Origin: Auanema rhodensis
Taxonomy: Eukaryota; Animalia; Nematoda
Direction: 5' to 3'
NCBI GenBank assembly: GCA_964057225.1
Contig: OZ059899.1
Location: forward strand, 4,712,001 to 4,776,000
Length of the DNA stretch: 64,000 nucleotides
Every line of letters begins with the position of its first letter. The stretch's first letter is position 1. Below are positions 15,001 to 55,015 of the stretch, in pieces. Both the position numbers and the translations under genes were made by a program. The notes below the pieces were generated by a model. It worked only from the letters and a program-made list of their open reading frames with translations, did no database searches and was not told the DNA's origin.

Positions 15001-18000
15001 GAATATAAGTGTGAACTTATATCAGTTGATATCTCGGTGCATTTTTAAGCTAGCGCAAATCTGATAACACAGATCGACGCAGCTTAAAAATCCGCATCGA
15101 ATGCACTATACTACATTGAGAAACGCTTAATACAAAAATTAGTTATGATCGTTTGAAAAATGATGCATTAGTGTATGTTGAGTTTCCATGTACACTCAAC
15201 ATTGCTTCCAAAAACATTTTGACAAAATTGTTTTCGGAAAATTTCAAAATAATTTAGCAAAAAGTAGATGTTTTTAGATTCCTTTTTTCAAGGCAAAGAC
15301 GATGGACAATGTTATTCAACGAAAAAATTGATTCTTCAGGGTGAAAATCGAGAATATAAGTGTGAACTTATATCAGTTGATATCTCGGTGAATTTTTAAG
15401 CTAGCGCAAATCTGATAACACAGATCGACGCAGCTTAAAAATCCGCATCGAATGCACTATACTACATTGAGAAACGCTTAATACAAAAATTAGTTATGAT
15501 CGTTTGAAAAATGATGCATTAGTGTATGTTGAGTTTCCATGTACACTCAACATTGCTTCCAAAAACATTTTGACAAAAATTTTTTCGAAAAATTTCAAAA
15601 TAATTTAGCAAAAAGTAGATGTTTTTAGATTCCTTTTTTCAAGGCAAAGACGATGGACAATGTTATTCAACGAAAAAATTAATTCTTCAGGGTGAAAATC
15701 GAGGATATAAGTGTGAACTTATATCAGTTGATATCTCGGTGCATTTTTAAGCTAGCGCAAATCTGATAACACGGATCGACGCAGCTTAAAAATCCGCATC
15801 GAATGCACTATACTACATTGAGAAACGCTTAATACAAAAATTAGTTATGATCGTTTGAAAAATGATGCATTAGTGTATGTTGAGTTTCCATGTACACTCA
15901 ACATTGCTTCCAAAAACATTTTGACAAAATTGTTTTCGGAAAATTTCAAAATAATTTAGCAAAAAGTAGATGTTTTTAGATTCCTTTTTTCAAGGCAAAG
16001 ACGATGGACAATGTTATTCAACGAAAAAATTGATTCTTCAGGGTGAAAATCGAGAATATAAGTGTGAACTTATATCAGTTGATATCTCGGTGAATTTTTA
16101 AGCTAGCGCAAATCTGATAACACAGATCGACGCAGCTTAAAAATCCGCATCGAATGCACTATACTACATTGAGAAACGCTTAATACAAAAATTAGTTATG
16201 ATCGTTTGAAAAATGATGCATTAGTGTATGTTGAGTTTCCATGTACACTCAACATTGCTTCCAAAAACATTTTGACAAAAATTTTTTCGAAAAATTTCAA
16301 AATAATTTAGCAAAAAGTAGATGTTTTTAGATTCCTTTTTTCAAGGCAAAGACGATGGACAATGTTATTCAACGAAAAAATTAATTCTTCAGGGTGAAAA
16401 TCGAGAATATAAGTGTGAACTTATATCAGTTGATATCTCGGTGAATTTTTAAGCTAGCGCAAATCTGATAACACAGATCGACGCAGCTTAAAAATCCGCA
16501 TCGAATGCACTATACTACATTGAGAAACGCTTAATACAAAAATTAGTTATGATCGTTTGAAAAATGATGCATTAGTGTATGTTGAGTTTCCATGTACACT
16601 CAACATTGCTTCCAAAAACATTTTGACAAAAATTTTTTCGAAAAATTTCAAAATAATTTAGCAAAAAGTAGATGTTTTTAGATTCCTTTTTTCAAGGCAA
16701 AGACGATGGACAATGTTATTCAACGAAAAAATTAATTCTTCAGGGTGAAAATCGAGGATATAAGTGTGAACTTATATCAGTTGATATCTCGGTGCATTTT
16801 TAAGCTAGCGCAAATCTGATAACAGAGATCGACGCAGCTTAAAAATCCGCATCGAATGCACTATACTACATTGAGAAACGCTTAATACAAAAATCAGTTA
16901 TGATCGTTTGAAAAATGATGCATTAGTGTATGTTGAGTTTCCATGTACACTCAACATTGCTTCCAAAAACATTTTGACAAAAATTTTTTCGAAAAATTTC
17001 AAAATAATTTAGCAAAAAGTAGATGTTTTTAGATTTCTGTTTTTAAGGCAAAGACGATGGACAATGTTATTCAACGAAAAAATTAATTCTTCAGGGTGAA
17101 AATCGAGGATATAAGTGTAAACTTATATCAGTTGATATCTCGGTGCATTTTCAAGCTAGCGCAAATCTGATAACAGAGATCGACGCAGCTTAAAAATCCG
17201 CATCGAATGCACTATACTACATTGAGAAACGCTTAATACAAAAATTAGTTATGATCGTTTGAAAAATGATGCATTAGTGTATGTTGAGTTTCCATGTACA
17301 CTCAACATTGCTTCCAAAAACATTTTGACAAAATTGTTTTCGGAAAATTTCAAAATAATTTAGCAAAAAGTAGATGTTTTTAGATTCCTTTTTTCAAGGC
17401 AAAGACGATGGACAATGTTATTCAACGAAAAAATTGATTCTTCAGGGTGAAAATCGAGAATATAAGTGTGAACTTATATCAGTTGATATCTCGGTGAATT
17501 TTTAAGCTAGCGCAAATCTGATAACACAGATCGACGCAGCTTAAAAATCCGCATCGAATGCACTATACTACATTGAGAAACGCTTAATACAAAAATTAGT
17601 TATGATCGTTTGAAAAATGATGCATTAGTGTATGTTGAGTTTCCATGTACACTCAACATTGCTTCCAAAAACATTTTGACAAAAATTTTTTCGAAAAATT
17701 TCAAAATAATTTAGCAAAAAGTAGATGTTTTTAGATTCCTTTTTTCAAGGCAAAGACGATGGACAATGTTATTCAACGAAAAAATTAATTCTTCAGGGTG
17801 AAAATCGAGAATATAAGTGTGAACTTATATCAGTTGATATCTCGGTGAATTTTTAAGCTAGCGCAAATCTGATAACACAGATCGACGCAGCTTAAAAATC
17901 CGCATCGAATGCACTATACTACATTGAGAAACGCTTAATACAAAAATTAGTTATGATCGTTTGAAAAATGATGCATTAGTGTATGTTGAGTTTCCATGTA

Positions 18001-19261
18001 CACTCAACATTGCTTCCAAAAACATTTTGACAAAAATTTTTTCGAAAAATTTCAAAATAATTTAGCAAAAAGTAGATGTTTTTAGATTCCTTTTTTCAAG
18101 GCAAAGACGATGGACAATGTTATTCAACGAAAAAATTAATTCTTCAGGGTGAAAATCGAGGATATAAGTGTGAACTTATATCAGTTGATATCTCGGTGCA
18201 TTTTTAAGCTAGCGCAAATCTGATAACAGAGATCGACGCAGCTTAAAAATCCGCATCGAATGCACTATACTACATTGAGAAACGCTTAATACAAAAATCA
18301 GTTATGATCGTTTGAAAAATGATGCATTAGTGTATGTTGAGTTTCCATGTACACTCAACATTGCTTCCAAAAACATTTTGACAAAAATTTTTTCGAAAAA
18401 TTTCAAAATAATTTAGCAAAAAGTAGATGTTTTTAGATTCCTTTTTTCAAGGCAAAGACGATGGACAATGTTATTCAACGAAAAAATTAATTCTTCAGGG
18501 TGAAAATCGAGGATATAAGTGTGAACTTATATCAGTTGATATCTCGGTGCATTTTTAAGCTAGCGCAAATCTGATAACACGGATCGACGCAGCTTAAAAA
18601 TCCGCATCGAATGCACTATACTACATTGAGAAACGCTTAATACAAAAATCAGTTATGATCGTTTGAAAAATGATGCATTAGTGTATGTTGAGTTTCCATG
18701 TACACTCAACATTGCTTCCAAAAACATTTTGACAAAAATTTTTTCGAAAAATTTCAAAATAATTTAGCAAAAAGTAGATGTTTTTAGATTCCTTTTTTCA
18801 AGGCAAAGACGATGGACAATGTTATTCAACGAAAAAATTAATTCTTCAGGGTGAAAATCGAGGATATAAGTGTGAACTTATATCAGTTGATATCTCGGTG
18901 CATTTTTAAGCTAGCGCAAATCTGATAACACAGATCGACGCAGCTTAAAAATCCGCATCGAATGCACTATACTACATTGAGAAACGCTTAATACAAAAAT
19001 CAGTTATGATCGTTTGAAAAATGATGCATTAGTGTATGTTGAGTTTCCATGTACACTCAACATTGCTTCCAAAAACATTTTGACAAAAATTTTTTCGAAA
19101 AATTTCAAAATAATTTAGCAAAAAGTAGATGTTTTTAGATTCCTTTTTTCAAGGCAAAGACGATGGACAATGTTATTCAACGAAAAAATTAATTCTTCAG
19201 GGTGAAAATCGAGGATATAAGTGTGAACTTATATCAGTTGATATCTCGGTGCATTTTTAAG
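1..19261. repeat. 351-bp tandem satellite array, ~55 units, runs off the window start
   Basis: TGAGTTTCCATGTACACTC recurs at 1, 352 and onward with a 351-bp period; units differ by a few substitutions; two units carry a 42-bp insertion; the array stops at ...GCATTTTTAAG (19261). Confidence 0.99.
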
Positions 19262-19351
19262 AAATTTTTGAGAAAGAAAAATAAAAAAGAAAGAAACATT
19301 TTTAAGAACAAAAATTTTCCCGAAAAATCTCGAAATAATTTTATAATATAA
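19262..19351. other. 90-bp junction between satellite array and palindrome arm; A-rich filler plus a degenerate satellite fragment
   Basis: AAACATTTTTAAGAACAAAAATTTTCCCGAAAAATCTCGAAATAATTT resembles satellite AAAACATTTTGACAAAAATTTTTTCGAAAAATTTCAAAATAATTT; no counterpart beyond the right arm. Confidence 0.7.
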
Positions 19352-20766
19352 TCCTGTGCCTGGCGCTCCTGATGATACAGTCAACGAGAAGAAAACTGAA
19401 GAGCTTCAGTCAGTGAAAGTTGATCCAAAGGTTCAAACTTCATTGAAAATAAATGCAATAACTTATACAAATTTTTTAGGTTTTCACAGTACTTCAGCCA
19501 GTTTACCAACCCCCTACTGCTATTCCAGTAAAGCAATACAACGTATGCTAGTCTTGACGACATTTTTACACATTTTTTCTTCTTCAGCCGTTCACATCAT
19601 TTTGCCGAATTCTTCTTTATGCTTTGCTTTTTGTAACCGTGACTGGTATTACTCTATATTTGGCTCATGGAATTTACCGGCGAGAATACATTCTGGTATG
19701 TATCATTGAAAAGTTTGAAGACCCGTGTCATTATTATCGAAAGAGATAGAATTGAGAAATAAATTTAATTTTCGTATTCTTACAGAAACAGCAATCCGAT
19801 TTGGTATCTGAGCTCCAGAAGAACCAAAAGATAACGCTCCAAGCTGAAAAGCAAGTTGGCGCAAATGTAACAATTTGTTCTAAAAAAATTCCTAATTTAA
19901 GGCACATTTTCAGACAAACTTAAATATTCAACAACCCAATCAACAAGTAATTGATGGAGCAGTCAATCACAGATTTAGCTTTGACGTATGTATGTAGTGA
20001 TAAATCTATATGTAAGAATTTTCTAACAGGGCTCTGAAAGGAATAACAAAGCTCCAAATCCATGGGATCTCATTGAGGCTCGCAACATTGAATATACACA
20101 GGTTATCATTTTCATTTCTATGTAAATAACTGAATACACATAATAAAAGTATACAAATAATAATTTATGACCAAAAATTATTTTCCAATCTGGTCGAACT
20201 AGACGATTGTTTTAGTATTTATCTTTTTTTTTTATTTTACTTAACAAAAATTATTAAACGATCAATAATAAGAAAATTAATACGTTGAAAAAAAGTAAAA
20301 TTCTTTTACTCTAATTGTATTTTGATATTTGTCAGAATCAACGCATGCTTCGTTATCGCCGTATCCAACAATTAGCAATGATGGAACAACAAGAACAAAT
20401 GGCTCGTGTTGCCTGGGCTCAACAAATGGAAGCACGTGCTCAATGGGAGGCTGCTCGAATGGCCCGTGCTCAATGGGAGCAAGCACAAATGGCCCGCGCT
20501 CAGTGGGAGCAAGGTCATCAAATCAGAGCTCAATGGGCTCAATATCAGGCTGCGCAACAACCGCAAGATATGCAACCAGATTTTTCATCTTGGCATCAGG
20601 TAAAAGCCTTGTAAGATCAAAACTTAAATAATAACTCAATTTCAGCAAATACGCGCCGATAATGAAGTTCGCGCTGCTGCTTTAGCTAACGCTCAACGCG
20701 AGCAATATGCTCAATGGGTTCAACAGCAACAAATGGAGCACTACAATCGCCAACAAACTTGGATTC

Positions 20767-20816
<50 letters not shown>

Positions 20817-22978
20817 GTCCAAGAACAGCAATTCCCACAGCCTCAAATTCGTGTAAGTATTCGACAAAAATTTATCAAATTTTAGATAAGTGAATGAAAA
20901 ATGAGAAATATTCGATTTCCTTAAAAAAATTCTTTTTTTAGCCGTTCATGATTGTTCGTACCTTCTCAAGAATTGTTCCAACTCATGAAAACAATGTGAG
21001 TCTTAATTTAAAAAATTCATTTTCGTTTTACTGATACGTTTCAAGCTTAATAGGTTCGGTTTTTTTAAGATCCCTCTTAGACCCCATGATGCTTCTCCTC
21101 AAGAGATTCTTAACAATATGAATGAACTTCCTCAACCAGCTATACAAGACCGAATCTATCAGGAAATGCAGAAAAAATCTCAAAAAATGGAATTCAATGC
21201 TCCATCTAGACCGATTTGTACGTGTTTTTCTACATTTTGTGCCTAAAGTGGATTTCAATTCAGGGACTGCTATAACTCCCACTCCAGAAACTCCATCTGT
21301 GAACTCTGATGAAATTTTTCAAGCCAACTTGAAGAGTGCCATGGAAATGGAAAGCGTAAACAGACCTTTTTTTTATAAATTCTGATGATAATCAGTTCTA
21401 GACTACTACTATTTCACCACCGTCTAACGCTGATAGTTCTGAAGATAAGGTTTGTAATCAAGTTCACTACTCTTTCAATCCAATTTTGTCTCAGAATGAA
21501 GACAATATCTTCCGAGATATTTTCAATGCTATGGCTGTTGTAGTTCAACAAGAGAATCAAAAAGCTAAGCAAGAAAATATTTTCCAAGAAGTTGAACAAA
21601 TGCAGGTAAAAATTCTATCTGAATTGATTTATCATTAATGCATTTATTGATTTCACAGAAGCAGCAGGAAGTTGAAGAAGAGCAGAAGAATGGAGAAAAC
21701 ATTTTCCAGACCGTTGACAGAATCCAGGTATAGTGAATATATTAGATTTTTGCCTTTGCTTGTTTAACCAACATTCCTATTCAGAAAGAGCAAGAATCAC
21801 AACAAGAGAAAGAAAATGGAGAGAATATATTTGAAGAAGTGAATCGTATTTCAGAGAAAACAGTATTATTATGAACAAATGTTTATTGTATTAACTCTTA
21901 TTTCACAGAACGTTCGACCAGTAGTAGAAGAAACAACTACCGAAAATATTTTTCAAGAAGTATCTCGCCTTTCTGACAAAGTAGGAAGTCTTTCTTAAAA
22001 ATTAACATTAGTATTAGTTTTAGAACCAGCCAAACGTTGATAATGAATTTGAAAAAAACAACAAAGAAAGTAAAAAAACAGGATCAAACATTTTTGAACA
22101 AATCACTCAGCTTGCGGACGCTATGGTTCTTATTATATTATACGTTCCAGGTTTATATAGCTGTTTAATTTTAGATGCCAAGAGTTGAACCGGAGAAGCC
22201 AATTCCAAATGATGACGATATATTCAAAATTGTGGAAAACACTTCAAAGGATCAAGGAGATGATAACGATGATAGAAAAGAAATTGTAAGATTTATTTCA
22301 CCGATTATTAATTAGTTAAATTAAGAAAAAACTTCAATTTTTTTTACAGCTTGAAGTTACACCTGAGCCAGTAGTAGTTGAAGATTCCTTTCCAAAAATT
22401 GAAGAAAGAACAACTACATCCGAAACCCCAAACGTAAATTTATTTTATTAACATTATCATAATCAATTGAAATTATAAAAAAACTTTGAACAAGTTAAAG
22501 ATTTTTGATCTCCCACTCAAATATATTTTTTAGGATAGTACTTCAGAGGAGCACGACCCACTGGCTGCTTTTGTAAAGTAAGAGTTTATTGACTTTAATT
22601 ATTTTCCTAATATTGTCATGATTTCATGACATAATTCAAAAAAATTCCTAGAATATAGTTTTGAAGTAATCAAAGAAAAATGAAGCATTACAAAGAAATA
22701 ATTAATCTTAAACTTCATCGCATCTTGTTTTTCATCTCGCTGAGATATAAAGGCAGGAGACTAGTTAACTATGAAATGAAAAGATTTTTTTTTATTTTAA
22801 AGTAAGACTAAAAAATTAAAACTGAAAAAAGATAAAACATGAAACATAAAACGGCTCATAAAAATATTTTTGTAGCATCGAAGATTTCGAGAGAAAGGCA
22901 CTAGAAGTTGTTAATGCCATGAAGTCTAATATGGAAAAAGAACAACCATCTCCAGTGGCTCAAATAAAAACGGCATAA
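19352..22978 (+). pseudogene. 5'-truncated duplicate of the secreted Gln-rich protein gene (no ATG or signal peptide)
   Basis: Mirror of 34333-37971; the arm begins at codons VPGAPDD and the upstream MKILIIFYLILCF... coding sequence is replaced by junction/satellite DNA. Confidence 0.75.
20766..20816 (+). repeat. (CAA)17 coding microsatellite (polyQ); mirror copy 36495-36557 has 21 units
   Basis: Direct count. Confidence 0.9.
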
Positions 22979-23018
22979 GTTTTCACTGTCTATCCTTTCT
23001 TCACAAATTAATTACTAT

Positions 23019-23024
23019 TCTCTC

Positions 23025-23093
<69 letters not shown>
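23019..23093. repeat. Compound (CT)n(TA)n microsatellite between convergent 3' ends; mirror at ~34206-34292 is 12 bp longer
   Basis: Direct reading. Confidence 0.9.
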
Positions 23094-23097
<4 letters not shown>

Positions 23098-23329
23098 GCT
23101 TTTTTATTGTACCTTCTTCCTTTCCCTCTAACTCTAGTGTTATATATATATATATATTATATCATCTGCTTTTTGAATCTTTAGTTGTATTCTACTGCTT
23201 TGCTAGCAGTCTTGTAAATAAAAATTTATACTACAACAAAATGTTTTACAAAGTTGGAGAAGTAGATATAAAACACGATTGGTTTCGTATTTTTAAATTT
23301 CGATTCACGGTAAAGTCAATCGTCCATTT

Positions 23330-25142
23330 TTATTTGTTTACAGTAAAAACAATTCGTCCATTTTTAACAACTTGTTTAATAATACTGTTCTGTCCAGCCA
23401 TTCTGAATGATTTAAAATTTTTCATACAAACCATTCTTTTCGTTATATAATCGAACCTGTAAATTATATGTTCCCATGACGGAGCATTCAAAACAACGAA
23501 ATCGGCATTTCGTCCAACACTAATAGCTCCTAAAATGAATGGGGGAGGCGGTACGACAATAGTAAAAGAAAACAATTACCATGTGTTTTTCCTCTACCAA
23601 TAGAATGAGCTGAATTCAAGGTTGCGGCAACTAATGCTTCATTCATAGATAAATGCATAGTGATACAAGCTAAAACAAGTACTATGAACTTTATGCAAAT
23701 ATGGTCTCTAACCCAAATGCATAATCATTGGCATGGAATAGCAGAATGCGTTTGGATTGAAGTCGGAACCAAGAGCTATAATCACATCTGTAAATAATTT
23801 GTTTTCAGTGGAGTATGTTTTCAAAAATTAAACTGTTTTCAATCATTTTACGCGCAGGAGGGGGGTTTAGACGTAGTATAAAGGCAGTGGACGGCAATAA
23901 AATAGCCACTGTTCCTGATGATGCCATAAGTGATATTCCAGTTTCCGATATCTCCTCCAGATGAGACATTGCACGAGCCTTCATGGAAAAATTCTTCGAA
24001 ATGAAAACCTCAGCTTACCCCAATACTTGAGCCCATTTCGACACCTCCTATATAAGTAAGCTCTTCAGCGTGAAAATTTGCTGCCAGTCCTATTTTTTTG
24101 CCAGCTTTCAGAATTCGTCGACTAAATATATAGTTTAACTAAAGTTAATCAACCAATTCCAAATACGCTGTCTCCACTTCAAAAACTCCCTTTTCACAAA
24201 AGACATCAATGTTTTCTAAGTTTTTGAATCCTCCTATTTTTTTCTCTCGTTCTATTTCAGGAATTATTTCGGTACAAATCATCTCAGTTTGAGTCAATTC
24301 GTCAGTATCCTAAAAGATCAAATTAGCTATGCATGCAGAGTTTACAACCTTCGGAACAGCATGCGCACCACAAAATGTTGCTGAAACTTCTAATGGGACA
24401 GTATTACACGCTCGACTTAAAACTCGCAACATCTCAAATTTTATAATAAAGTTTTTTATTATCAATCAGCTCATTCACTTTCAACTCTGATTCTTTATCC
24501 AAACCGTAACCGCTTTTAGCTTCGAGTGTTGTTGTGCCATCTTTGACCATCATTCCCGCGACCTGCTCCATAAAAATAATGTGGATTGAGGTGTTTTTAT
24601 ACCTCAACAAAAGATAGTAGTAGCTCTTCTTCGCTTGCAGCCCTAGTTCTTGATGTTGTGAAATGAATTCCACCGCCTGCTGCTTGAACCTTTGCCGACA
24701 ATATTAAAAGATTTCTAAATTATTTCAATTTTCTTACTTCCATGTAAGTGGCGCCAGCTAATTTCATCGCAAATTCGTGAACACGATCTCCAGCAAAGAC
24801 GGGATGTGAGTGAGCATCCACAAAGCCGGGAATTAAAATTCCTCCATGTGATTCTACAATATTCTCTACTTGTTTCTCATCAATGGAATTCACTATGCTA
24901 GAGAGATCCCCGACAGCAGATATTTTGCCATTTGCATCAACTAAGACTGCTAAGTTGCACGATGCGTCTTCCAATATCTTTAAAATTCATCTATTCTTAT
25001 CTTTATAAAAGTAGAAGCACATGGTGGTAGTACCAACCTTTATGTTGTTCATATTTTCTTTTCCATGAAGAAACTCAACATTATGATCGTCTGTAATCTG
25101 GATGATTTGCTTCAATCCTTTGATAAGAAGTAGTGAAGACAT
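23330..25142 (-). CDS. amdh-1: Imidazolonepropionase (AMDHD1/HutI amidohydrolase), left-arm copy
   Basis: IPGFVDAHSHPVFAGDRVHEFAMKLAGATYMEV, GTTTLEAKSGYGL, DVFCEKGVF, ALGSDFNPNA motifs; mirror of 32157-33969. Confidence 0.92.
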
Positions 25143-25560
25143 GTAACCTGAAAATAATTTTCAAATATTATTGAAAATAAGAGAAAAATCATGTGATAGA
25201 TTGCATAGTAGACAAATGGTGTCAATCAACCAAATGGAAGACCGGCAAACTGTATGCTATTCTTTTATAGGATCGACAACCTGTTTCAACTCATAAAAAC
25301 AGAAAAATTGCTTTCATCATTCTTCACATTAAGGGAGAAAAGGATTCTGATCCTCTTAAACCAGGATGGTTTTTTGTAATTTCCATCTACAGAATTAAAC
25401 AATCACATATCCGATGAAAAGCAAAATTTCCTAATAAAAATCCATGTGTTTGCTATTATACATAAAACAAAATATTTTATTTTCATTAAAAACTAGCGTG
25501 ATACAATATTATCACTTAAAATGATCGAATCAGATTTAAAACTTTTTTTTATTCATTATT

Positions 25561-28119
25561 TTATGCATTTTTTTCGTTCAAAACTTGAGAAAAATTAGAT
25601 GAATCATAGTCGTCACCCATTTGGGTGTCATCATTGAAAACACCATAAATTAATTTTTTTAATTCAAGTAGATCGTTTGAAACAATTTCCTCAAACCGTT
25701 CGAGATGAACTTTTCCCAGAGACTGAAAATAAATATTTCAAAATTTTTAAAAAATGTTTTAAAAAATACGTCTGTAATTTCCGGAACCGGCATTTGCTTC
25801 AGTTTTGAACGGACCTCACTTACTCGCGCCTTAATGCATAGTTCATGTAAATAAAAGTAAGACTTACACACCGAAATACATGCTTCGAATTCTTTATTGG
25901 TCTTTGCAGCTGTTGAATCTTCTTCTGCATATGCTTCTAGTGCAGAGCCAATAGCACCATGAGTGAGCACTGTCAAACGATCATCCCAGGCCATATCTTC
26001 AAAGTATGATGATATCTATAACAAAAACAATACAGATAGCGATAGAAATTAGCATGATTTCATGCTTGAATCTCACAACTTGTTCCACATTAGCAGCACT
26101 TACGGCCGCTGTTGGTTGATTAGCTTGATGTTGCTTCCCATTCCGACAATCTTTTTTCTTTTTATCTCCTATCTAACAAACAAATTGATGAAAACAAAAA
26201 ACTACTCGCTTACTCGCTTAGTAACAATCATATCAAGTGCATTTGCAACCTGATCATCGAATTTCGCTCCTACACGACGCACATTTATAGGCTGAAATAA
26301 ATATATAACATTTTAAAAATATATAATATTTACTTGCATATCAGCCCATGCTCCAGCATAAATAACTTTCAGCCGAATCAAAGGTAGTTTCGGCTGTCTT
26401 GGACCTCGAGCTAGATTGGCTCGTTTTATCATTTCTTCAACTTTTTGCTTTATGACAACTTCATCCTTTAACAGTTTTCATAAAAACTAAAACTGAAAAC
26501 ATCGATTACCAAAAAAGGAGGCCCATTTGGCCTAACACCCCCTGAAGGAATTCGCACATTTTTTGGTAGGTCATCCAAAATAATTTCATCGCATATAATC
26601 TTAATCAAATTGCCATAATGAGAATATGAGAAATACCTGACGAGTAGTTTGTAAAGGAATCGGCTTGCACTGGAATTTCCTTCCCCGAATTTTGATCAAA
26701 AAAACATTTTTTTCAAGGGCCTCCTCTTTCGTAAGAGACGTAGCAATGGTGGAGCCAGGTTGAAGAACGAAAAAGCCATCACCCATAGCATCAGAAGAAG
26801 AAATATATTGACACTCTAAATATGATAATATGCAGACAAATAAATAAAACTTCTGAGAACTACCCTTCTTACACTCATGTTCATGACCCCAAATTACTAA
26901 ATCGAAAAACGATGGAATGTATTGTTCAGGTAAATAAGCTCCTGTTGACCTGGTAGTGGATCTTAATAAATCACATATAGATAAAAGTGGAGTATCAAAG
27001 TAACAAAAAACCGTTTAGGTCGATTTTGGTGCAAAACAAAAAGGTTAAACCAATCTTCGGCTCCTGCTTGCGGTCTCAGGAATTTAATAGATTCATCTAA
27101 GTTCAAGTTATATGCTTCGAAAAAAAAAAATTTACTTTGAAATGCTCTACATAAGCGATCATCACGCTGGCTTCCCAATCCAAATAGAGCCAATCTCGTT
27201 TCACCTTTACGTAAGAGAATAGGAGAAATCTAGTACTCAGAAAAATTTAAATACATATACATTGCATTGGTTACCTCGAAAGTATCGATATCTTCATGTT
27301 TTCCAAACAAGTTCACTAAACCAGCTTCGTGAAGGAGATCAAGAGCAGTTAAACCCTTGAAGACTACATTAGAGCAGAAAACCACAAGTAATACCTTGCC
27401 TGCCATGTCATCATGGTTACCATGTATAGTAAATATAGGTAAGCCAACATTTATATTACAGTCCTAAATAAGATCATTACAATATAAGTGTTATTATTAA
27501 ATGGATACTTCATAATTTACTCGATCAAACCGACTTTGATTGAAATTCACAGAAGCATCGGACAAAAACTCAAGAGCAACCTGTTAGATTAGAAATGCTG
27601 AAACAATATAATATTCCAATGAGACATACTTCTCGATCATTAAGACAATATTGGCGTAAAAGTTGAACGACCCTATGCTGCATGTCTCTTGTTGGTTGGT
27701 TTTCATGAAATAAATCTCCACCTATAATTAGTCTGAGCAAAAAAAACTGCAAACATAATTACCTAGTAATACCATGTCAACATTTTTATCAACAGCAATT
27801 TGCAGAACTTCTTCGAGCGAATTGATAGAATCCAAATATCTAAACTCAACAATGAAATATATCCAACCTATATGATCACCTATTCGGTTTATTTTCTGCA
27901 TAGCCGACATGAATATCTGTGGCAACCAATATTTTTATATCATCCGTATCACCCTTGCCCGTAAGTGCTAACTCATTTACCTAAAATAATTAACTAAATT
28001 AACCGTCCGTATTCACTCACAAGTGATTCATTCAATGGAATATTATGTAGAATAGAACTGTCCACGTTGTCAATAACTGATTTGTCCAATTCTATATCGG
28101 ATTCATCTTCCCCACACAT
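25561..28119 (-). CDS. mre-11: MRE11 double-strand-break repair nuclease, left-arm copy
   Basis: Mirror of 29180-31738; no difference seen between the mirror ORF translations. Confidence 0.92.
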
Positions 28120-28331
28120 TATTTCCACTTAAATATTAAAATTAAACAAATGCATGTCTAACAGTGACACACACAATCTGACAAAACTAAGAAAAAATAC
28201 GTAATATATATCGTAAATAGTTACTATCACGTCTAATCATAAAATTTTTTTTTAAATTGAATAAAAATATGAACGGATTTTATGTTCATTTTTAGGCTTT
28301 TAGTGTTTAGTCAGTTCTATTCTAGAATTTG

Positions 28332-28367
28332 TTTTTATATCTGTTTAGGCTCAGCCGATAATAAAAA
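28332..28367 (+). other. Candidate chromosome-break/telomere-addition motif TTTAGGC-TCA-GCC in AT-rich dyad flanks (left copy)
   Basis: TTTTTATATCTGTTTAGGCTCAGCCGATAATAAAAA; nematode telomere hexamer TTAGGC at 28345-28350; function inferred, not shown. Confidence 0.45.
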
Positions 28368-28593
28368 TGTTGTTCATCCAATAAAAAAACTACAAAGATA
28401 AAATTAACACTAAAATCCTTGCCAAACATACCTTTCAAAATCATCAAAACCTGCATTATAACGTTGAACAAACCACTCTCTTATAATATAAAAGGTTTTT
28501 TTTTCACTTTTTTCCAATATGATTATGCTAAAAAGCAATTTCACCCTAAAGAATGTATTTTTTCGTCTAATAACATTGTCCATCGTTTTTGTC

Positions 28594-28762
28594 TTGAAGA
28601 CAGATCGACGCAGCTTGAAAAAACGCATCAGATGCACTTAACGACATCAAGAAAAAGATAAGTTATAATCGTTTGAAAAATGATGTATTAGTGTATGTTG
28701 AGTTTGACAAAAACGATGAACAATGTTATTAGACGAAAAAATACATTCTTTAGGGTGAAATT
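28594..28762 (+). repeat. Degenerate, internally deleted copy of the 351-bp satellite forming the palindrome spacer (28594-28705) and the innermost part of the arms
   Basis: ACAGATCGACGCAGCTTGAAAAAACGCATC...GTTTGAAAAATGATGTATTAGTGTATGTTGAGTTT, then GACAAAAACGATGAACAATGTTATTAGACGAAAAAATACATTCTTTAGGGTGAAA, align to two segments of the satellite unit. Confidence 0.9.
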
Positions 28763-28931
28763 GCTTTTTAGCATAATCATATTGGAAAAAAGTGAAAAAA
28801 AAACCTTTTATATTATAAGAGAGTGGTTTGTTCAACGTTATAATGCAGGTTTTGATGATTTTGAAAGGTATGTTTGGCAAGGATTTTAGTGTTAATTTTA
28901 TCTTTGTAGTTTTTTTATTGGATGAACAACA

Positions 28932-28967
28932 TTTTTATTATCGGCTGAGCCTAAACAGATATAAAAA
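28932..28967 (-). other. Candidate chromosome-break/telomere-addition motif (right, mirror copy; GGC-TGA-GCCTAAA on +)
   Basis: GCCTAA at 28949-28954, oriented as a left-end telomere seed for the gene-rich right side; function inferred. Confidence 0.45.
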
Positions 28968-29179
28968 CAAATTCTAGAATAGAACTGACTAAACACTAAA
29001 AGCCTAAAAATGAACATAAAATCCGTTCATATTTTTATTCAATTTAAAAAAAAATTTTATGATTAGACGTGATAGTAACTATTTACGATATATATTACGT
29101 ATTTTTTCTTAGTTTTGTCAGATTGTGTGTGTCACTGTTAGACATGCATTTGTTTAATTTTAATATTTAAGTGGAAATA

Positions 29180-31738
29180 ATGTGTGGGGAAGATGAATCC
29201 GATATAGAATTGGACAAATCAGTTATTGACAACGTGGACAGTTCTATTCTACATAATATTCCATTGAATGAATCACTTGTGAGTGAATACGGACGGTTAA
29301 TTTAGTTAATTATTTTAGGTAAATGAGTTAGCACTTACGGGCAAGGGTGATACGGATGATATAAAAATATTGGTTGCCACAGATATTCATGTCGGCTATG
29401 CAGAAAATAAACCGAATAGGTGATCATATAGGTTGGATATATTTCATTGTTGAGTTTAGATATTTGGATTCTATCAATTCGCTCGAAGAAGTTCTGCAAA
29501 TTGCTGTTGATAAAAATGTTGACATGGTATTACTAGGTAATTATGTTTGCAGTTTTTTTTGCTCAGACTAATTATAGGTGGAGATTTATTTCATGAAAAC
29601 CAACCAACAAGAGACATGCAGCATAGGGTCGTTCAACTTTTACGCCAATATTGTCTTAATGATCGAGAAGTATGTCTCATTGGAATATTATATTGTTTCA
29701 GCATTTCTAATCTAACAGGTTGCTCTTGAGTTTTTGTCCGATGCTTCTGTGAATTTCAATCAAAGTCGGTTTGATCGAGTAAATTATGAAGTATCCATTT
29801 AATAATAACACTTATATTGTAATGATCTTATTTAGGACTGTAATATAAATGTTGGCTTACCTATATTTACTATACATGGTAACCATGATGACATGGCAGG
29901 CAAGGTATTACTTGTGGTTTTCTGCTCTAATGTAGTCTTCAAGGGTTTAACTGCTCTTGATCTCCTTCACGAAGCTGGTTTAGTGAACTTGTTTGGAAAA
30001 CATGAAGATATCGATACTTTCGAGGTAACCAATGCAATGTATATGTATTTAAATTTTTCTGAGTACTAGATTTCTCCTATTCTCTTACGTAAAGGTGAAA
30101 CGAGATTGGCTCTATTTGGATTGGGAAGCCAGCGTGATGATCGCTTATGTAGAGCATTTCAAAGTAAATTTTTTTTTTTCGAAGCATATAACTTGAACTT
30201 AGATGAATCTATTAAATTCCTGAGACCGCAAGCAGGAGCCGAAGATTGGTTTAACCTTTTTGTTTTGCACCAAAATCGACCTAAACGGTTTTTTGTTACT
30301 TTGATACTCCACTTTTATCTATATGTGATTTATTAAGATCCACTACCAGGTCAACAGGAGCTTATTTACCTGAACAATACATTCCATCGTTTTTCGATTT
30401 AGTAATTTGGGGTCATGAACATGAGTGTAAGAAGGGTAGTTCTCAGAAGTTTTATTTATTTGTCTGCATATTATCATATTTAGAGTGTCAATATATTTCT
30501 TCTTCTGATGCTATGGGTGATGGCTTTTTCGTTCTTCAACCTGGCTCCACCATTGCTACGTCTCTTACGAAAGAGGAGGCCCTTGAAAAAAATGTTTTTT
30601 TGATCAAAATTCGGGGAAGGAAATTCCAGTGCAAGCCGATTCCTTTACAAACTACTCGTCAGGTATTTCTCATATTCTCATTATGGCAATTTGATTAAGA
30701 TTATATGCGATGAAATTATTTTGGATGACCTACCAAAAAATGTGCGAATTCCTTCAGGGGGTGTTAGGCCAAATGGGCCTCCTTTTTTGGTAATCGATGT
30801 TTTCAGTTTTAGTTTTTATGAAAACTGTTAAAGGATGAAGTTGTCATAAAGCAAAAAGTTGAAGAAATGATAAAACGAGCCAATCTAGCTCGAGGTCCAA
30901 GACAGCCGAAACTACCTTTGATTCGGCTGAAAGTTATTTATGCTGGAGCATGGGCTGATATGCAAGTAAATATTATATATTTTTAAAATGTTATATATTT
31001 ATTTCAGCCTATAAATGTGCGTCGTGTAGGAGCGAAATTCGATGATCAGGTTGCAAATGCACTTGATATGATTGTTACTAAGCGAGTAAGCGAGTAGTTT
31101 TTTGTTTTCATCAATTTGTTTGTTAGATAGGAGATAAAAAGAAAAAAGATTGTCGGAATGGGAAGCAACATCAAGCTAATCAACCAACAGCGGCCGTAAG
31201 TGCTGCTAATGTGGAACAAGTTGTGAGATTCAAGCATGAAATCATGCTAATTTCTATCGCTATCTGTATTGTTTTTGTTATAGATATCATCATACTTTGA
31301 AGATATGGCCTGGGATGATCGTTTGACAGTGCTCACTCATGGTGCTATTGGCTCTGCACTAGAAGCATATGCAGAAGAAGATTCAACAGCTGCAAAGACC
31401 AATAAAGAATTCGAAGCATGTATTTCGGTGTGTAAGTCTTACTTTTATTTACATGAACTATGCATTAAGGCGCGAGTAAGTGAGGTCCGTTCAAAACTGA
31501 AGCAAATGCCGGTTCCGGAAATTACAGACGTATTTTTTAAAACATTTTTTAAAAATTTTGAAATATTTATTTTCAGTCTCTGGGAAAAGTTCATCTCGAA
31601 CGGTTTGAGGAAATTGTTTCAAACGATCTACTTGAATTAAAAAAATTAATTTATGGTGTTTTCAATGATGACACCCAAATGGGTGACGACTATGATTCAT
31701 CTAATTTTTCTCAAGTTTTGAACGAAAAAAATGCATAA
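29180..31738 (+). CDS. mre-11: MRE11 double-strand-break repair nuclease, right-arm copy (3' end approximate)
   Basis: Starts MCGEDES; phosphoesterase motifs ILVATDIHVGY, LLGGDLFHEN, IHGNHDD, LFVLHQNR, IWGHEHEC, QPGSTIATSL, LPLIRLKV across more than 12 short introns. Confidence 0.93.
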
Positions 31739-32156
31739 AATAATGAATAAAAAAAAGTTTTAAATCTGATTCGATCATTTTAAGTGATAATATTGTATCA
31801 CGCTAGTTTTTAATGAAAATAAAATATTTTGTTTTATGTATAATAGCAAACACATGGATTTTTATTAGGAAATTTTGCTTTTCATCGGATATGTGATTGT
31901 TTAATTCTGTAGATGGAAATTACAAAAAACCATCCTGGTTTAAGAGGATCAGAATCCTTTTCTCCCTTAATGTGAAGAATGATGAAAGCAATTTTTCTGT
32001 TTTTATGAGTTGAAACAGGTTGTCGATCCTATAAAAGAATAGCATACAGTTTGCCGGTCTTCCATTTGGTTGATTGACACCATTTGTCTACTATGCAATC
32101 TATCACATGATTTTTCTCTTATTTTCAATAATATTTGAAAATTATTTTCAGGTTAC

Positions 32157-33969
32157 ATGTCTTCACTACTTCTTATCAAAGGATTGAAGCAAATCATCCA
32201 GATTACAGACGATCATAATGTTGAGTTTCTTCATGGAAAAGAAAATATGAACAACATAAAGGTTGGTACTACCACCATGTGCTTCTACTTTTATAAAGAT
32301 AAGAATAGATGAATTTTAAAGATATTGGAAGACGCATCGTGCAACTTAGCAGTCTTAGTTGATGCAAATGGCAAAATATCTGCTGTCGGGGATCTCTCTA
32401 GCATAGTGAATTCCATTGATGAGAAACAAGTAGAGAATATTGTAGAATCACATGGAGGAATTTTAATTCCCGGCTTTGTGGATGCTCACTCACATCCCGT
32501 CTTTGCTGGAGATCGTGTTCACGAATTTGCGATGAAATTAGCTGGCGCCACTTACATGGAAGTAAGAAAATTGAAATAATTTAGAAATCTTTTAATATTG
32601 TCGGCAAAGGTTCAAGCAGCAGGCGGTGGAATTCATTTCACAACATCAAGAACTAGGGCTGCAAGCGAAGAAGAGCTACTACTATCTTTTGTTGAGGTAT
32701 AAAAACACCTCAATCCACATTATTTTTATGGAGCAGGTCGCGGGAATGATGGTCAAAGATGGCACAACAACACTCGAAGCTAAAAGCGGTTACGGTTTGG
32801 ATAAAGAATCAGAGTTGAAAGTGAATGAGCTGATTGATAATAAAAAACTTTATTATAAAATTTGAGATGTTGCGAGTTTTAAGTCGAGCGTGTAATACTG
32901 TCCCATTAGAAGTTTCAGCAACATTTTGTGGTGCGCATGCTGTTCCGAAGGTTGTAAACTCTGCATGCATAGCTAATTTGATCTTTTAGGATACTGACGA
33001 ATTGACTCAAACTGAGATGATTTGTACCGAAATAATTCCTGAAATAGAACGAGAGAAAAAAATAGGAGGATTCAAAAACTTAGAAAACATTGATGTCTTT
33101 TGTGAAAAGGGAGTTTTTGAAGTGGAGACAGCGTATTTGGAATTGGTTGATTAACTTTAGTTAAACTATATATTTAGTCGACGAATTCTGAAAGCTGGCA
33201 AAAAAATAGGACTGGCAGCAAATTTTCACGCTGAAGAGCTTACTTATATAGGAGGTGTCGAAATGGGCTCAAGTATTGGGGTAAGCTGAGGTTTTCATTT
33301 CGAAGAATTTTTCCATGAAGGCTCGTGCAATGTCTCATCTGGAGGAGATATCGGAAACTGGAATATCACTTATGGCATCATCAGGAACAGTGGCTATTTT
33401 ATTGCCGTCCACTGCCTTTATACTACGTCTAAACCCCCCTCCTGCGCGTAAAATGATTGAAAACAGTTTAATTTTTGAAAACATACTCCACTGAAAACAA
33501 ATTATTTACAGATGTGATTATAGCTCTTGGTTCCGACTTCAATCCAAACGCATTCTGCTATTCCATGCCAATGATTATGCATTTGGGTTAGAGACCATAT
33601 TTGCATAAAGTTCATAGTACTTGTTTTAGCTTGTATCACTATGCATTTATCTATGAATGAAGCATTAGTTGCCGCAACCTTGAATTCAGCTCATTCTATT
33701 GGTAGAGGAAAAACACATGGTAATTGTTTTCTTTTACTATTGTCGTACCGCCTCCCCCATTCATTTTAGGAGCTATTAGTGTTGGACGAAATGCCGATTT
33801 CGTTGTTTTGAATGCTCCGTCATGGGAACATATAATTTACAGGTTCGATTATATAACGAAAAGAATGGTTTGTATGAAAAATTTTAAATCATTCAGAATG
33901 GCTGGACAGAACAGTATTATTAAACAAGTTGTTAAAAATGGACGAATTGTTTTTACTGTAAACAAATAA
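32157..33969 (+). CDS. amdh-1: Imidazolonepropionase (AMDHD1/HutI amidohydrolase), right-arm copy
   Basis: ATG at 32157 just after a TTTTCAG acceptor (likely trans-splice site); HxH metal motif, EAKSGYGL, FHAEEL, SHLE, GSDFNP; stop at 33969. Confidence 0.92.
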
Positions 33970-34201
33970 AAATGGACGATTGACTTTACCGTGAATCGAA
34001 ATTTAAAAATACGAAACCAATCGTGTTTTATATCTACTTCTCCAACTTTGTAAAACATTTTGTTGTAGTATAAATTTTTATTTACAAGACTGCTAGCAAA
34101 GCAGTAGAATACAACTAAAGATTCAAAAAGCAGATGATATAATATATATATATATATAACACTAGAGTTAGAGGGAAAGGAAGAAGGTACAATAAAAAAG
34201 C

Positions 34202-34286
<85 letters not shown>

Positions 34287-34332
34287 GAGAGAATAGTAAT
34301 TAATTTGTGAAGAAAGGATAGACAGTGAAAAC

Positions 34333-36494
34333 TTATGCCGTTTTTATTTGAGCCACTGGAGATGGTTGTTCTTTTTCCATATTAGACTTCATGGCATTAA
34401 CAACTTCTAGTGCCTTTCTCTCGAAATCTTCGATGCTACAAAAATATTTTTATGAGCCGTTTTATGTTTCATGTTTTATCTTTTTTCAGTTTTAATTTTT
34501 TAGTCTTACTTTAAAATAAAAAAAAATCTTTTCATTTCATAGTTAACTAGTCTCCTGCCTTTATATCTCAGCGAGATGAAAAACAAGATGCGATGAAGTT
34601 TAAGATTAATTATTTCTTTGTAATGCTTCATTTTTCTTTGATTACTTCAAAACTATATTCTAGGAATTTTTTTGAATTATGTCATGAAATCATGACAATA
34701 TTAGGAAAATAATTAAAGTCAATAAACTCTTACTTTACAAAAGCAGCCAGTGGGTCGTGCTCCTCTGAAGTACTATCCTAAAAAATATATTTGAGTGGGA
34801 GATCAAAAATCTTTAACTTGTTCAAAGATTTTTTATAATTTCAATTGATTATGATAATGTTAATAAAATAAATTTACGTTTGGGGTTTCGGATGTAGTTG
34901 TTCTTTCTTCAATTTTTGGAAAGGAATCTTCAACTACTACTGGCTCAGGTGTAACTTCAAGCTGTAAAAAAAAATGAAGTTTTTTCTTAATTTAACTAAT
35001 TAATAATCGGTGAAATAAATCTTACAATTTCTTTTCTATCATCGTTATCATCTCCTTGATCCTTTGAAGTGTTTTCCACAATTTTGAATATATCGTCATC
35101 ATTTGGAATTGGCTTCTCCGGTTCAACTCTTGGCATCTAAAATTAAACAGCTATATAAACCTGGAACGTATAATATAATAAGAACCATAGCGTCCGCAAG
35201 CTGAGTGATTTGTTCAAAAATGTTTGATCCTGTTTTTTTACTTTCTTTGTTGTTTTTTTCAAATTCATTATCAACGTTTGGCTGGTTCTAAAACTAATAC
35301 TAATGTTAATTTTTAAGAAAGACTTCCTACTTTGTCAGAAAGGCGAGATACTTCTTGAAAAATATTTTCGGTAGTTGTTTCTTCTACTACTGGTCGAACG
35401 TTCTGTGAAATAAGAGTTAATACAATAAACATTTGTTCATAATAATACTGTTTTCTCTGAAATACGATTCACTTCTTCAAATATATTCTCTCCATTTTCT
35501 TTCTCTTGTTGTGATTCTTGCTCTTTCTGAATAGGAATGTTGGTTAAACAAGCAAAGGCAAAAATCTAATATATTCACTATACCTGGATTCTGTCAACGG
35601 TCTGGAAAATGTTTTCTCCATTCTTCTGCTCTTCTTCAACTTCCTGCTGCTTCTGTGAAATCAATAAATGCATTAATGATAAATCAATTCAGATAGAATT
35701 TTTACCTGCATTTGTTCAACTTCTTGGAAAATATTTTCTTGCTTAGCTTTTTGATTCTCTTGTTGAACTACAACAGCCATAGCATTGAAAATATCTCGGA
35801 AGATATTGTCTTCATTCTGAGACAAAATTGGATTGAAAGAGTAGTGAACTTGATTACAAACCTTATCTTCAGAACTATCAGCGTTAGACGGTGGTGAAAT
35901 AGTAGTAGTCTAGAACTGATTATCATCAGAATTTATAAAAAAAAGGTCTGTTTACGCTTTCCATTTCCATGGCACTCTTCAAGTTGGCTTGAAAAATTTC
36001 ATCAGAGTTCACAGATGGAGTTTCTGGAGTGGGAGTTATAGCAGTCCCTGAATTGAAATCCACTTTAGGCACAAAATGTAGAAAAACACGTACAAATCGG
36101 TCTAGATGGAGCATTGAATTCCATTTTTTGAGATTTTTTCTGCATTTCCTGATAGATTCGGTCTTGTATAGCTGGTTGAGGAAGTTCATTCATATTGTTA
36201 AGAATCTCTTGAGGAGAAGCATCATGGGGTCTAAGAGGGATCTTAAAAAAACCGAACCTATTAAGCTTGAAACGTATCAGTAAAACGAAAATGAATTTTT
36301 TAAATTAAGACTCACATTGTTTTCATGAGTTGGAACAATTCTTGAGAAGGTACGAACAATCATGAACGGCTAAAAAAAGAATTTTTTTAAGGAAATCGAA
36401 TATTTCTCATTTTTCATTCACTTATCTAAAATTTGATAAATTTTTGTCGAATACTTACACGAATTTGAGGCTGTGGGAATTGCTGTTCTTGGAC

Positions 36495-36556
<62 letters not shown>

Positions 36557-38075
36557 GAATCCAAGTTTGTTGGCGATTGTAGTGCTCCATTTGTTGCTGT
36601 TGAACCCATTGAGCATATTGCTCGCGTTGAGCGTTAGCTAAAGCAGCAGCGCGAACTTCATTATCGGCGCGTATTTGCTGAAATTGAGTTATTATTTAAG
36701 TTTTGATCTTACAAGGCTTTTACCTGATGCCAAGATGAAAAATCTGGTTGCATATCTTGCGGTTGTTGCGCAGCCTGATATTGAGCCCATTGAGCTCTGA
36801 TTTGATGACCTTGCTCCCACTGAGCGCGGGCCATTTGTGCTTGCTCCCATTGAGCACGGGCCATTCGAGCAGCCTCCCATTGAGCACGTGCTTCCATTTG
36901 TTGAGCCCAGGCAACACGAGCCATTTGTTCTTGTTGTTCCATCATTGCTAATTGTTGGATACGGCGATAACGAAGCATGCGTTGATTCTGACAAATATCA
37001 AAATACAATTAGAGTAAAAGAATTTTACTTTTTTTCAACGTATTAATTTTCTTATTATTGATCGTTTAATAATTTTTGTTAAGTAAAATAAAAAAAAAAG
37101 ATAAATACTAAAACAATCGTCTAGTTCGACCAGATTGGAAAATAATTTTTGGTCATAAATTATTATTTGTATACTTTTATTATGTGTATTCAGTTATTTA
37201 CATAGAAATGAAAATGATAACCTGTGTATATTCAATGTTGCGAGCCTCAATGAGATCCCATGGATTTGGAGCTTTGTTATTCCTTTCAGAGCCCTGTTAG
37301 AAAATTCTTACATATAGATTTATCACTACATACATACGTCAAAGCTAAATCTGTGATTGACTGCTCCATCAATTACTTGTTGATTGGGTTGTTGAATATT
37401 TAAGTTTGTCTGAAAATGTGCCTTAAATTAGGAATTTTTTTAGAACAAATTGTTACATTTGCGCCAACTTGCTTTTCAGCTTGGAGCGTTATCTTTTGGT
37501 TCTTCTGGAGCTCAGATACCAAATCGGATTGCTGTTTCTGTAAGAATACGAAAATTAAATTTATTTCTCAATTCTATCTCTTTCGATAATAATGACACGG
37601 GTCTTCAAACTTTTCAATGATACATACCAGAATGTATTCTCGCCGGTAAATTCCATGAGCCAAATATAGAGTAATACCAGTCACGGTTACAAAAAGCAAA
37701 GCATAAAGAAGAATTCGGCAAAATGATGTGAACGGCTGAAGAAGAAAAAATGTGTAAAAATGTCGTCAAGACTAGCATACGTTGTATTGCTTTACTGGAA
37801 TAGCAGTAGGGGGTTGGTAAACTGGCTGAAGTACTGTGAAAACCTAAAAAATTTGTATAAGTTATTGCATTTATTTTCAATGAAGTTTGAACCTTTGGAT
37901 CAACTTTCACTGACTGAAGCTCTTCAGTTTTCTTCTCGTTGACTGTATCATCAGGAGCGCCAGGCACAGGAACTATGCCTAGTTTTGTCATTTTTGCTGA
38001 AAAGTACACTATTTTCATAAACATAATACATATTGTAAAACAAAGAATCAGATAGAAAATGATGAGAATCTTCAT
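34333..38075 (-). CDS. Multi-exon, predicted secreted protein of unknown function: signal peptide, Cys-containing segment, ARAQWEQ repeats, polyQ, repeated (E/D)NIF(Q/E)xV acidic motifs
   Basis: Hydrophobic N-terminus MKILIIFYLILCFTICI; exons bounded by GT..AG short introns; last exon ...EQPSPVAQIKTA* with stop at 34333-34335; full splicing not resolved. Confidence 0.7.
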
Positions 38076-43628: not shown

Positions 43629-43779
<151 letters not shown>

Positions 43780-54940: not shown

Positions 54941-54983
54941 TTCTCTTTCTCTTTCTCTCTCTCTCTCTTTCTCTCTCTCTCTC

Positions 54984-55015
<32 letters not shown>

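Follow-up and report, generated by a model that had tools for sequence, protein, structure and literature searches.

A gene-bearing palindrome straddles a candidate programmed DNA elimination site in the nematode Auanema rhodensis

Programmed DNA elimination (PDE) removes part of the germline genome from somatic cells. In the nematodes Oscheius tipulae and Auanema rhodensis (hereafter A. rhodense), breakage occurs at a motif termed sequence for elimination (SFE), a degenerate palindrome of 29 nt with 3-8 mismatches, in which GGC and GCC invariably stand 3 nt apart. Breakage and the addition of a telomere both take place at the centre of the motif, where GGC/GCC primes new TTAGGC telomeres on both sides. 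In O. tipulae, cleavage affects every SFE and is followed by healing of both ends, and the DNA distal to the gene-side site is lost; the requirement of the SFE for breakage has been addressed by motif editing together with sequencing of somatic DNA, and “alternative SFEs,” some of them recently duplicated, are known. In A. rhodense, 61% of the germline genome is eliminated, mostly as tandem repeats with units of 167-504 nt; breakage is precise in position and coincides with a 29-nt palindromic SFE (bioRxiv 10.64898/2026.08.27.747507). The same preprint lists the eliminated paralogs beside the chromosome 6 boundary, namely mre-11, a glutamine-rich brp-1 orthologue, and imidazolonepropionase, and reports, for break sites on three other chromosomes, strong motif matches ≤1.1 kb away on the eliminated side. 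Here, we describe a locus that bears on the origin of genes confined to the germline and of redundant break sites in animals with PDE, an 18.6-kb palindrome of two gene-bearing arms in a 64,000-nt stretch of A. rhodense DNA (GenBank assembly GCA_964057225.1, contig OZ059899.1, positions 4,712,001 to 4,776,000 of the forward strand). We refer to this whole stretch as the window and number positions from its first letter. The palindrome adjoins a satellite array and has an SFE-type motif in each arm. We consider it likely that it is a real germline structure, which formed when the first 9.25 kb of retained DNA beside an elimination boundary was copied, inverted, into the degenerate edge of the eliminated satellite. 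The copied stretch includes the break motif, mre-11, an imidazolonepropionase gene, a glutamine-rich (Q-rich) gene, and part of an orphan gene.

Palindromes of comparable form have been described in other settings. Among systems with PDE, the nearest relative is the palindrome of the Tetrahymena ribosomal DNA, for which short inverted repeats near a free end drive fold-back at a programmed breakage site. Like the A. rhodense locus, it is ~20 kb long, has a short non-palindromic centre, and lies beside a programmed break site. Unlike the A. rhodense locus, it is somatic and is remade in each generation from a single germline copy, whereas the structure described here appears to belong to the germline and to be dismantled in the soma. 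A seed resembling the Tetrahymena M repeats is also not evident in A. rhodense beyond a 2-nt overlap. The human Y chromosome offers a second comparison: its palindromes P1-P8 have arms of ≥9 kb that are ≥99.9% identical, a spacer that is short and unique, and mirrored genes, and they are ancient, gene-converted, and occupied by testis gene families. The A. rhodense palindrome resembles such sex-chromosome palindromes in arm size, arm identity, its short spacer, and its mirrored genes, but differs in that one arm is cut off against a satellite and is probably confined to the germline. Finally, inversions attributed to fork stalling and template switching or microhomology-mediated break-induced replication (FoSTeS/MMBIR), or to breakage-fusion-bridge cycles, in yeast, human disease, and cancer share with our locus inverted arms, an asymmetric short spacer, minimal microhomology, and an edge that is rich in repeats and hard to replicate. 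In contrast to those cases, the A. rhodense palindrome is a fixed germline feature in an inbred line of a holocentric animal, and it involves no terminal deletion of retained DNA.

The structure of the palindrome is sharply defined. An inverted-repeat search of the window returned three collinear blocks, each 100% complementary (Table 1), which together with the 112-nt spacer make up the 18.6 kb. Aligned globally and over their full length, the left arm and the reverse-complemented right arm differ at exactly five places: three substitutions (0.03% of 9,242 nt) and two length changes, for an arm-to-arm identity of 99.97% that breaks off abruptly at both outer ends. There are zero N in the window, and 9.2 kb of inverted identity cannot have arisen by chance. 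The two microsatellite length changes are of the same size (12 nt) and the same direction, the right arm being the longer in each case; one of the two sites is a compound CT/TA microsatellite inside the arms (23019-23094 / 34205-34292). Among the five differences, only the in-frame change in poly-Q length is coding. The other four are noncoding, including one in the polypyrimidine tract of an apparent 3′ splice site, and no open reading frame (ORF) covers the single-nucleotide polymorphism (SNP) at 22337/34974 or the one at 22483/34828. The original prediction, made from the letters of the window, had proposed arms of ~9.25 kb around a 112-bp spacer, with three substitutions and two 12-bp microsatellite changes between them; repeat search and alignment reproduce its coordinates exactly, and the list of differences turns out to be complete. 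It had also joined the palindrome to a satellite array, which is correct, with a degenerate stretch of 90 nt (19262-19351) in between, and had regarded the left arm as the derived copy. For the outer end this last claim is supported, because the edge of the left arm, at 19352, truncates an ORF whose right-hand copy is complete. It does not hold for the inner end, where it is the right arm that appears to have changed later.

At ~240 nt from the inner end, both arms contain the same 29-mer, whose flanks are AT-rich and whose core reads GGC-N3-GCC. Eight of its 14 palindromic pairs match and six mismatch, which is within the published range for SFEs. In the 64 kb, chance would give 0.19 occurrences of the string TAGGCNNNGCC; there are two, at mirror positions. 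To the left of the site lie the satellite array and its relics, and to the right lie genes, as at the junctions of gene-rich and repeat-rich DNA that SFEs occupy. By sequence and position, the two 29-mers therefore qualify as candidate motifs of SFE type. They resemble the SFEs of O. tipulae and A. rhodense both in form (a degenerate 29-nt palindrome with the same core and AT-rich flanks at a border between retained and eliminated DNA) and in the presence of an extra motif copy on the eliminated side, where some of the known copies are recent duplicates. The difference from the SFE duplicates described in the main texts searched is that the second motif of our locus lies within a 9.25-kb, gene-bearing inverted copy and is thus a mirror image, 595 nt away. 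The bipartite, non-palindromic SFE of Caenorhabditis was also considered and does not fit the arm motif. According to the original prediction, duplication of the break motif would be a route to new elimination sites. The duplicated motif itself is borne out, by the identity of the mirrored 29-mers and by contigs from two sequencing runs that diverge at the gene-side centre (see below), but no new somatic end has resulted; instead, the palindrome straddles the existing boundary.

Public sequence data on this boundary take the form of Logan contigs. Words of the right-arm and flank stretch are contained in 15 public runs, eight of which contain 97-99% of them. Contigs of four runs (X1, X4, X5, and X9) were aligned to 28294-31293 with a likeness threshold of 90; at this threshold, thousands of short satellite-like contigs cover the spacer and the arm-end relics and mask junction contigs. 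In X4 and X5, a long arm contig starts to fit at 28948, the gene-side motif centre, after 20 non-matching letters, and in X1 the arm contig begins at 29000. X9, which is labelled as a different organism, has three arm contigs with 0-1 mismatch each relative to the window. The first of them reads through the motif to 28706 (28706-29592, 887 nt, 1 mismatch) and then continues with 41 letters that are unlike the right end of the spacer. Contigs from X1, X4, and X5 are missing over 28794-28893 and over 28294-28493, a hole that by itself proves nothing; the inner bins are swamped by satellite-like contigs. This pattern is the one that PDE predicts, in which the motif centre is the end of most worm DNA and only a minor, germline form continues beyond it, and the 20 unlike letters in X4 and X5 would then be telomere repeats. 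The X9 contig hints indirectly at a second sequence context for the inner end of the arm, for which the sole candidate in this assembly is the left junction. A further indirect hint is its single mismatch. This is best placed at 28719, where it would be the left-arm allele, because it is unlisted among the variant letters, as is expected only where satellite contigs swamp the depth. The X9 sample may be rich in germline, or may come from a line that does not cut at this motif.

The genes in the arms tie the locus to the published elimination boundary. The mre-11 copies, which lie head to head with 1061 nt from ATG to ATG, encode recognizable motifs (an exon with ILVATDIHVGY, followed by GNHDD and GHEHE), and a sequence search of the PDB with a single exon matched MRE11/Rad32 structures (E=3e-7). 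A single exon of the neighboring gene matched imidazolonepropionases in the same kind of search (E=1e-8). The third gene is Q-rich; we call it brp-1-like after the gene list of the preprint. Given this gene content and the agreement in position with the literature, it is highly likely that the window contains the chromosome 6 elimination boundary of the preprint. The satellite array is very probably eliminated, germline-restricted DNA. Likewise, it is very probable that the soma keeps the right arm and that the left arm is restricted to the germline, because the left arm is distal to the break motif that is used and because the preprint lists the same genes as eliminated paralogs. As with other germline-restricted genes, both those of A. 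rhodense (mre-11, imidazolonepropionase, and brp-1-like) and the eliminated genes of Ascaris, retained paralogs exist. Unlike dispersed eliminated paralogs, those described here form one block that mirrors the adjacent retained block with 99.97% identity, intergenic DNA and motif included, and such a block points to one very young duplication event. While the eliminated paralogs have been published, the arrangement as a palindrome, and how it relates to the break motif, seem not to have been described: the main text of the preprint, to which our search was confined, makes no mention of an 18.6-kb palindrome. It speaks of palindromes only in connection with the motif, of inversion only for a symbol in a figure, and of duplication only with regard to a different gene and in the name of a software package.

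Several observations weigh against a real germline palindrome at an elimination boundary. We saw no read or contig that directly bridges 28593/28594 or 19351/19352, the spacer bins being swamped at a threshold of 90. The lack of contigs from X1, X4, and X5 on 28794-28893 could stem from low germline content or from the filter. Two germline copies, somatic loss of the left arm, and telomere repeats at 28948 are proposed rather than shown by reads. The X9 hint could instead reflect a strain with a different border, and the assignment to chromosome 6 follows from the match to the literature and not from an accession.

In the extreme, the left arm could be absent from the genome, with a fold-back chimeric read or a mis-overlap in the satellite having mirrored the right arm during assembly, and with the arm differences being consensus errors or alleles. 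Palindromic chimeras are a known artefact of long reads. Two of the three substitutions lie at homopolymer edges, neither junction-spanning reads nor a 2:1 depth ratio were obtained from the contig alignment, and the hole on 28794-28893 in three runs would also be accounted for. We nevertheless regard such an artefact as very unlikely. It would require two independent false joins, one at the axis and one at 19351/19352, the latter continuing into 19 kb of array free of N. The spacer is native satellite-like sequence and is asymmetric; a SMRTbell adapter in this place can be ruled out, the spacer being 86% identical to the local satellite. Neither the microsatellite length changes nor the satellite consensus base of the left arm at 28580 would be expected from consensus errors, and in the X9 contig the arm continues from its inner end in a second way. 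The preprint assembly was made with hifiasm, purge_dups, and manual curation from unamplified PacBio HiFi data of an inbred line, sheared to ~15 kb (bioRxiv 10.64898/2026.08.27.747507). Haplotigs were thus purged, and reads of ~15 kb can reach the axis from either outer junction, which makes the two arms resolvable. Provided that the window derives from this assembly, a chimera produced by multiple displacement amplification is unlikely as well. Lastly, the preprint authors annotated and counted the eliminated paralogs.

The satellite sequence in and around the palindrome shows where the inverted copy came to lie. Spacing between anchors in the array is 351 bp in 49 of the 52 intervals, and most units are 98-100% identical to the consensus obtained from an anchor-based MAFFT alignment of the units. 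The array stops at consensus position 329 and, after 32 unrelated nucleotides, restarts at 141-184 (19294-19341, 40/48 matches). The spacer starts at 346, its positions 28597-28705 corresponding to consensus 346-351 followed by 1-114 (94/109 matches, 86%) in array orientation, so the phases of border and spacer disagree. At the left arm's inner end, the relic extends 5 nt beyond the arm into the spacer (28594-28598) with its satellite phase kept, whereas 106 nt of satellite phase are missing at the step from the spacer to the right arm (28705/28706). The base at 28580 in the left arm agrees with the consensus, and that at 28719 in the right arm does not. Because of the phase skip and this non-consensus base, the right side of the axis appears to have been altered during or after the duplication, and the present spacer is probably not pristine. 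Every satellite piece is in array orientation save the one inside the left arm. Because the axis and the flanks of both junctions stem from the 351-bp satellite, and because of this pattern of orientation, the inverted copy seems to have been inserted into the border of the array. The satellite unit itself has an inverted repeat at consensus 108-135 (e.g., 19036-19063), consisting of a 9-nt stem ATGTTGAGT, a 10-nt loop, and ACTCAACAT, and the right end of the spacer at 28705 falls within the loop of this hairpin. In two variant units of 393 bp, anchor spacing is 42 nt longer than usual; one further interval measures 352 bp.

The geometry of the junctions is that of a fold-back: the arms are near-identical and inverted, the spacer is short and non-palindromic, the right arm continues natively, and the left arm ends at a novel junction. 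At the axis junction (J2), as opposed to the outer junction (J1), an overlap of 2 nt is visible. A fold-back is suggested because the inverted copy lies beside a repeat border, because the spacer is asymmetric and in native orientation, and because homology at the junctions is minimal. The same features could, in principle, be the product of two steps. In such a scenario, a double-strand break at the satellite border would be followed by a hairpin fold-back that gives a chromosome mirrored over a whole arm, which would later break 9.25 kb from the axis and be joined to satellite DNA. Nematode chromosomes are holocentric, which would make a mirror chromosome tolerable; an asymmetric spacer in array orientation is what fold-back at a resected end leaves; and the irregular border at J1, out of phase with the spacer, means that 19351 and 28594 need not have been neighbors. 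With 2 nt of microhomology visible at J2, the junctions do not discriminate between one step and two, and neither does the irregular phase of the border pieces. We consider the two-step origin unlikely, since it requires two rare events and a transient chromosome duplicated over >12 Mb, and since simple insertion explains more economically why all satellite pieces outside the left arm are in array orientation.

Under the preferred reading, a single inverted copy inserted into the array border, events might have unfolded as follows. A strand being copied toward the satellite would turn back ~0.1-0.2 kb behind the tip, by fold-back or by a replication template switch, then copy 9.25 kb of the opposite strand, and finally rejoin the satellite border. 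In the early embryo, cleavage would then fall in the middle of the GGC-N3-GCC motif. From 28948 onward, the right arm would form the somatic chromosome end, with a new telomere and with mre-11 only 233 nt away, while the soma would lose the satellite, the left arm, the mirror motif, and the 595-nt centre; if both motifs are cleaved, the 595-nt centre would be excised. The duplication would be invisible to the soma, whose genome would be as it was before, and the germline would gain second copies of genes and a spare break site. Both the mechanism and the date of origin are inferred.

The original prediction had named both a very recent fold-back and arm-to-arm gene conversion as sources of the near identity, and how old the duplication is depends on whether the arms exchange sequence. 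A Caenorhabditis-like mutation rate is roughly 2e-9 per site per generation. At such a rate, and if there has been no gene conversion, the duplication would be on the order of 1e5 generations old or younger, as a rough estimate. Alternatively, the palindrome could be old, with germline gene conversion between the arms keeping them 99.97% identical, as happens in the palindromes of sex chromosomes. The axis was apparently remodelled after formation, with 5 nt of phase and ~106 nt of relic lost on the right and a derived base at 28719, which suggests that time has elapsed; the only substitution near the axis is also ≤14 nt from the arm end, where conversion tracts rarely reach. This remodelling could, however, belong to the same complex event as the duplication. 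Two microsatellites differ in length between the arms, both by 12 nt and both in the same direction, and neutral change over a few tens of thousands of generations could account for all five differences. The X9 contigs match the window too closely (0-1 mismatch per kb) to serve as a contrast between lineages. We find an old, converted palindrome doubtful and favor a young duplication.

Seen as a young duplication, the locus looks like an early stage in the origin of germline-restricted genes and redundant break sites: one inverted duplication of a somatic chromosome end would have provided a mirror motif and intact second copies of three genes, among them mre-11, which encodes a DNA-end-processing nuclease. 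The new copies would be germline-only and the somatic genome unchanged. It is conceivable, although we hold it only tentatively, that elimination boundaries act as nurseries more generally. Because copies on the eliminated side never reach the soma, fold-back duplications might be tolerated there, arise repeatedly, and seed spare break sites and germline-only genes. If this is true, a germline-only mre-11 could specialize for meiosis or for the processing of programmed breaks, and PDE would dismantle an unstable palindrome in each somatic lineage. The arm-specific markers (three SNPs and two length variants, including the coding poly-Q) would let sequencing alone address cleavage at the two motifs, expression of the eliminated arm, and exchange between the arms.

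Table 1. Coordinates of the palindrome, its satellite surroundings, candidate break motifs, arm differences, and genes in the window
Feature	Position	Strand	Remarks
351-bp satellite array	1-19261	+	Tandem Repeats Finder: period 351, 54.6 copies, 97% matches; runs off the left edge of the window
Degenerate array border	19262-19351	+	90 nt; 32 A-rich nt unrelated to the satellite, then a diverged satellite relic
Junction J1	19351/19352		border relic to left arm
Left arm	19352-28593		9242 nt; apparently the derived inverted copy; probably germline-restricted
Spacer	28594-28705	+	112 nt; diverged satellite relic
Right arm	28706-37971		9266 nt; apparently the original copy; probably retained in the soma from 28948 rightwards
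Inverted block 1	19352-20827 / 36496-37971		inverted-repeat search
Inverted block 2	20766-23094 / 34217-36545		inverted-repeat search
Inverted block 3	23019-28593 / 28706-34280		inverted-repeat search
Left-arm inner satellite relic	28539-28598	-	consensus 216-275, 53/60
Junction J2	28597/28598		truly novel junction; 2-nt overlap (AA at 28597-28598) between minus- and plus-strand satellite homology
Right-arm inner satellite relic	28708-28760		within the inner 55 nt; consensus 223-275
SFE-type motif, left (mirror) copy	28338-28366		29-mer TATCTGTTTAGGCTCAGCCGATAATAAAA; core GGCTCAGCC at 28348-28356; centre 28352
SFE-type motif, gene-side copy	28933-28961		exact reverse complement of TATCTGTTTAGGCTCAGCCGATAATAAAA; core GGCTGAGCC at 28943-28951; centre 28947
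Segment between motif centres	28353-28946		594 nt; centres 595 nt apart; contains the palindrome axis
Substitution	22337/34974		A (left) / T (right)
Substitution	22483/34828		A (left) / T (right)
Substitution	28580/28719		C (left) / T (right); ≤14 nt from the arm end
Length change	36546-36557		right arm longer by 12 nt, (CAA)4
Length change	34270-34281		right arm longer by 12 nt, (CT)6
mre-11, right copy	29180-31738	+	ATG 29180, stop 31736-31738
mre-11, left copy	25561-28119	-	mirror of 29180-31738
Imidazolonepropionase gene, right copy	32157-33969	+	
Imidazolonepropionase gene, left copy	23330-25142	-	mirror of 32157-33969
Q-rich (brp-1-like) gene, right copy	~34950-37008	-	stop-free segments; (CAA)21 in frame as poly-Q
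Q-rich (brp-1-like) gene, left copy	~20315-22361	+	poly-Q 4 Q shorter than in the right copy
Outer orphan ORF, right copy	37614-38075	-	complete first coding stretch; ATG, hydrophobic N-terminus; crosses the arm end at 37971
Outer orphan ORF, left copy	19352-19709	+	first 35 codons (ATG, hydrophobic N-terminus) missing

Some further features of the arms and of the window deserve mention. A Pfam search with single-exon translations from the arms gave only one weak match, to amidohydrolase, and none for the left copy of the orphan ORF. The (TTAGGC)2 telomere repeat was searched for across the 64-kb window and is absent, so the window contains neither a germline telomere nor an interstitial telomere tract. 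If the break falls at 28947/28948, the upstream region of the somatic mre-11 would measure <240 nt in all. Both copies of the Q-rich gene contain an imperfect tandem repeat of 30 nt (2.5 copies; 20435-20513 and 36814-36888), one frame of which gives units resembling ARAQWEQ. In the retained region, a 54-nt imperfect tandem repeat at 46579-46683, where GC content is locally high (41%), encodes Gly-X-Y collagen repeats on the minus strand and probably belongs to a cuticle collagen gene, and microsatellites occur at 43665-43739, (AT)37, and 54942-55014, (TC)36. A 217-nt inverted repeat further to the right (57694-57910 / 60296-60512), 96% complementary with arms 2385 nt apart, may represent the terminal repeats of a mobile element.

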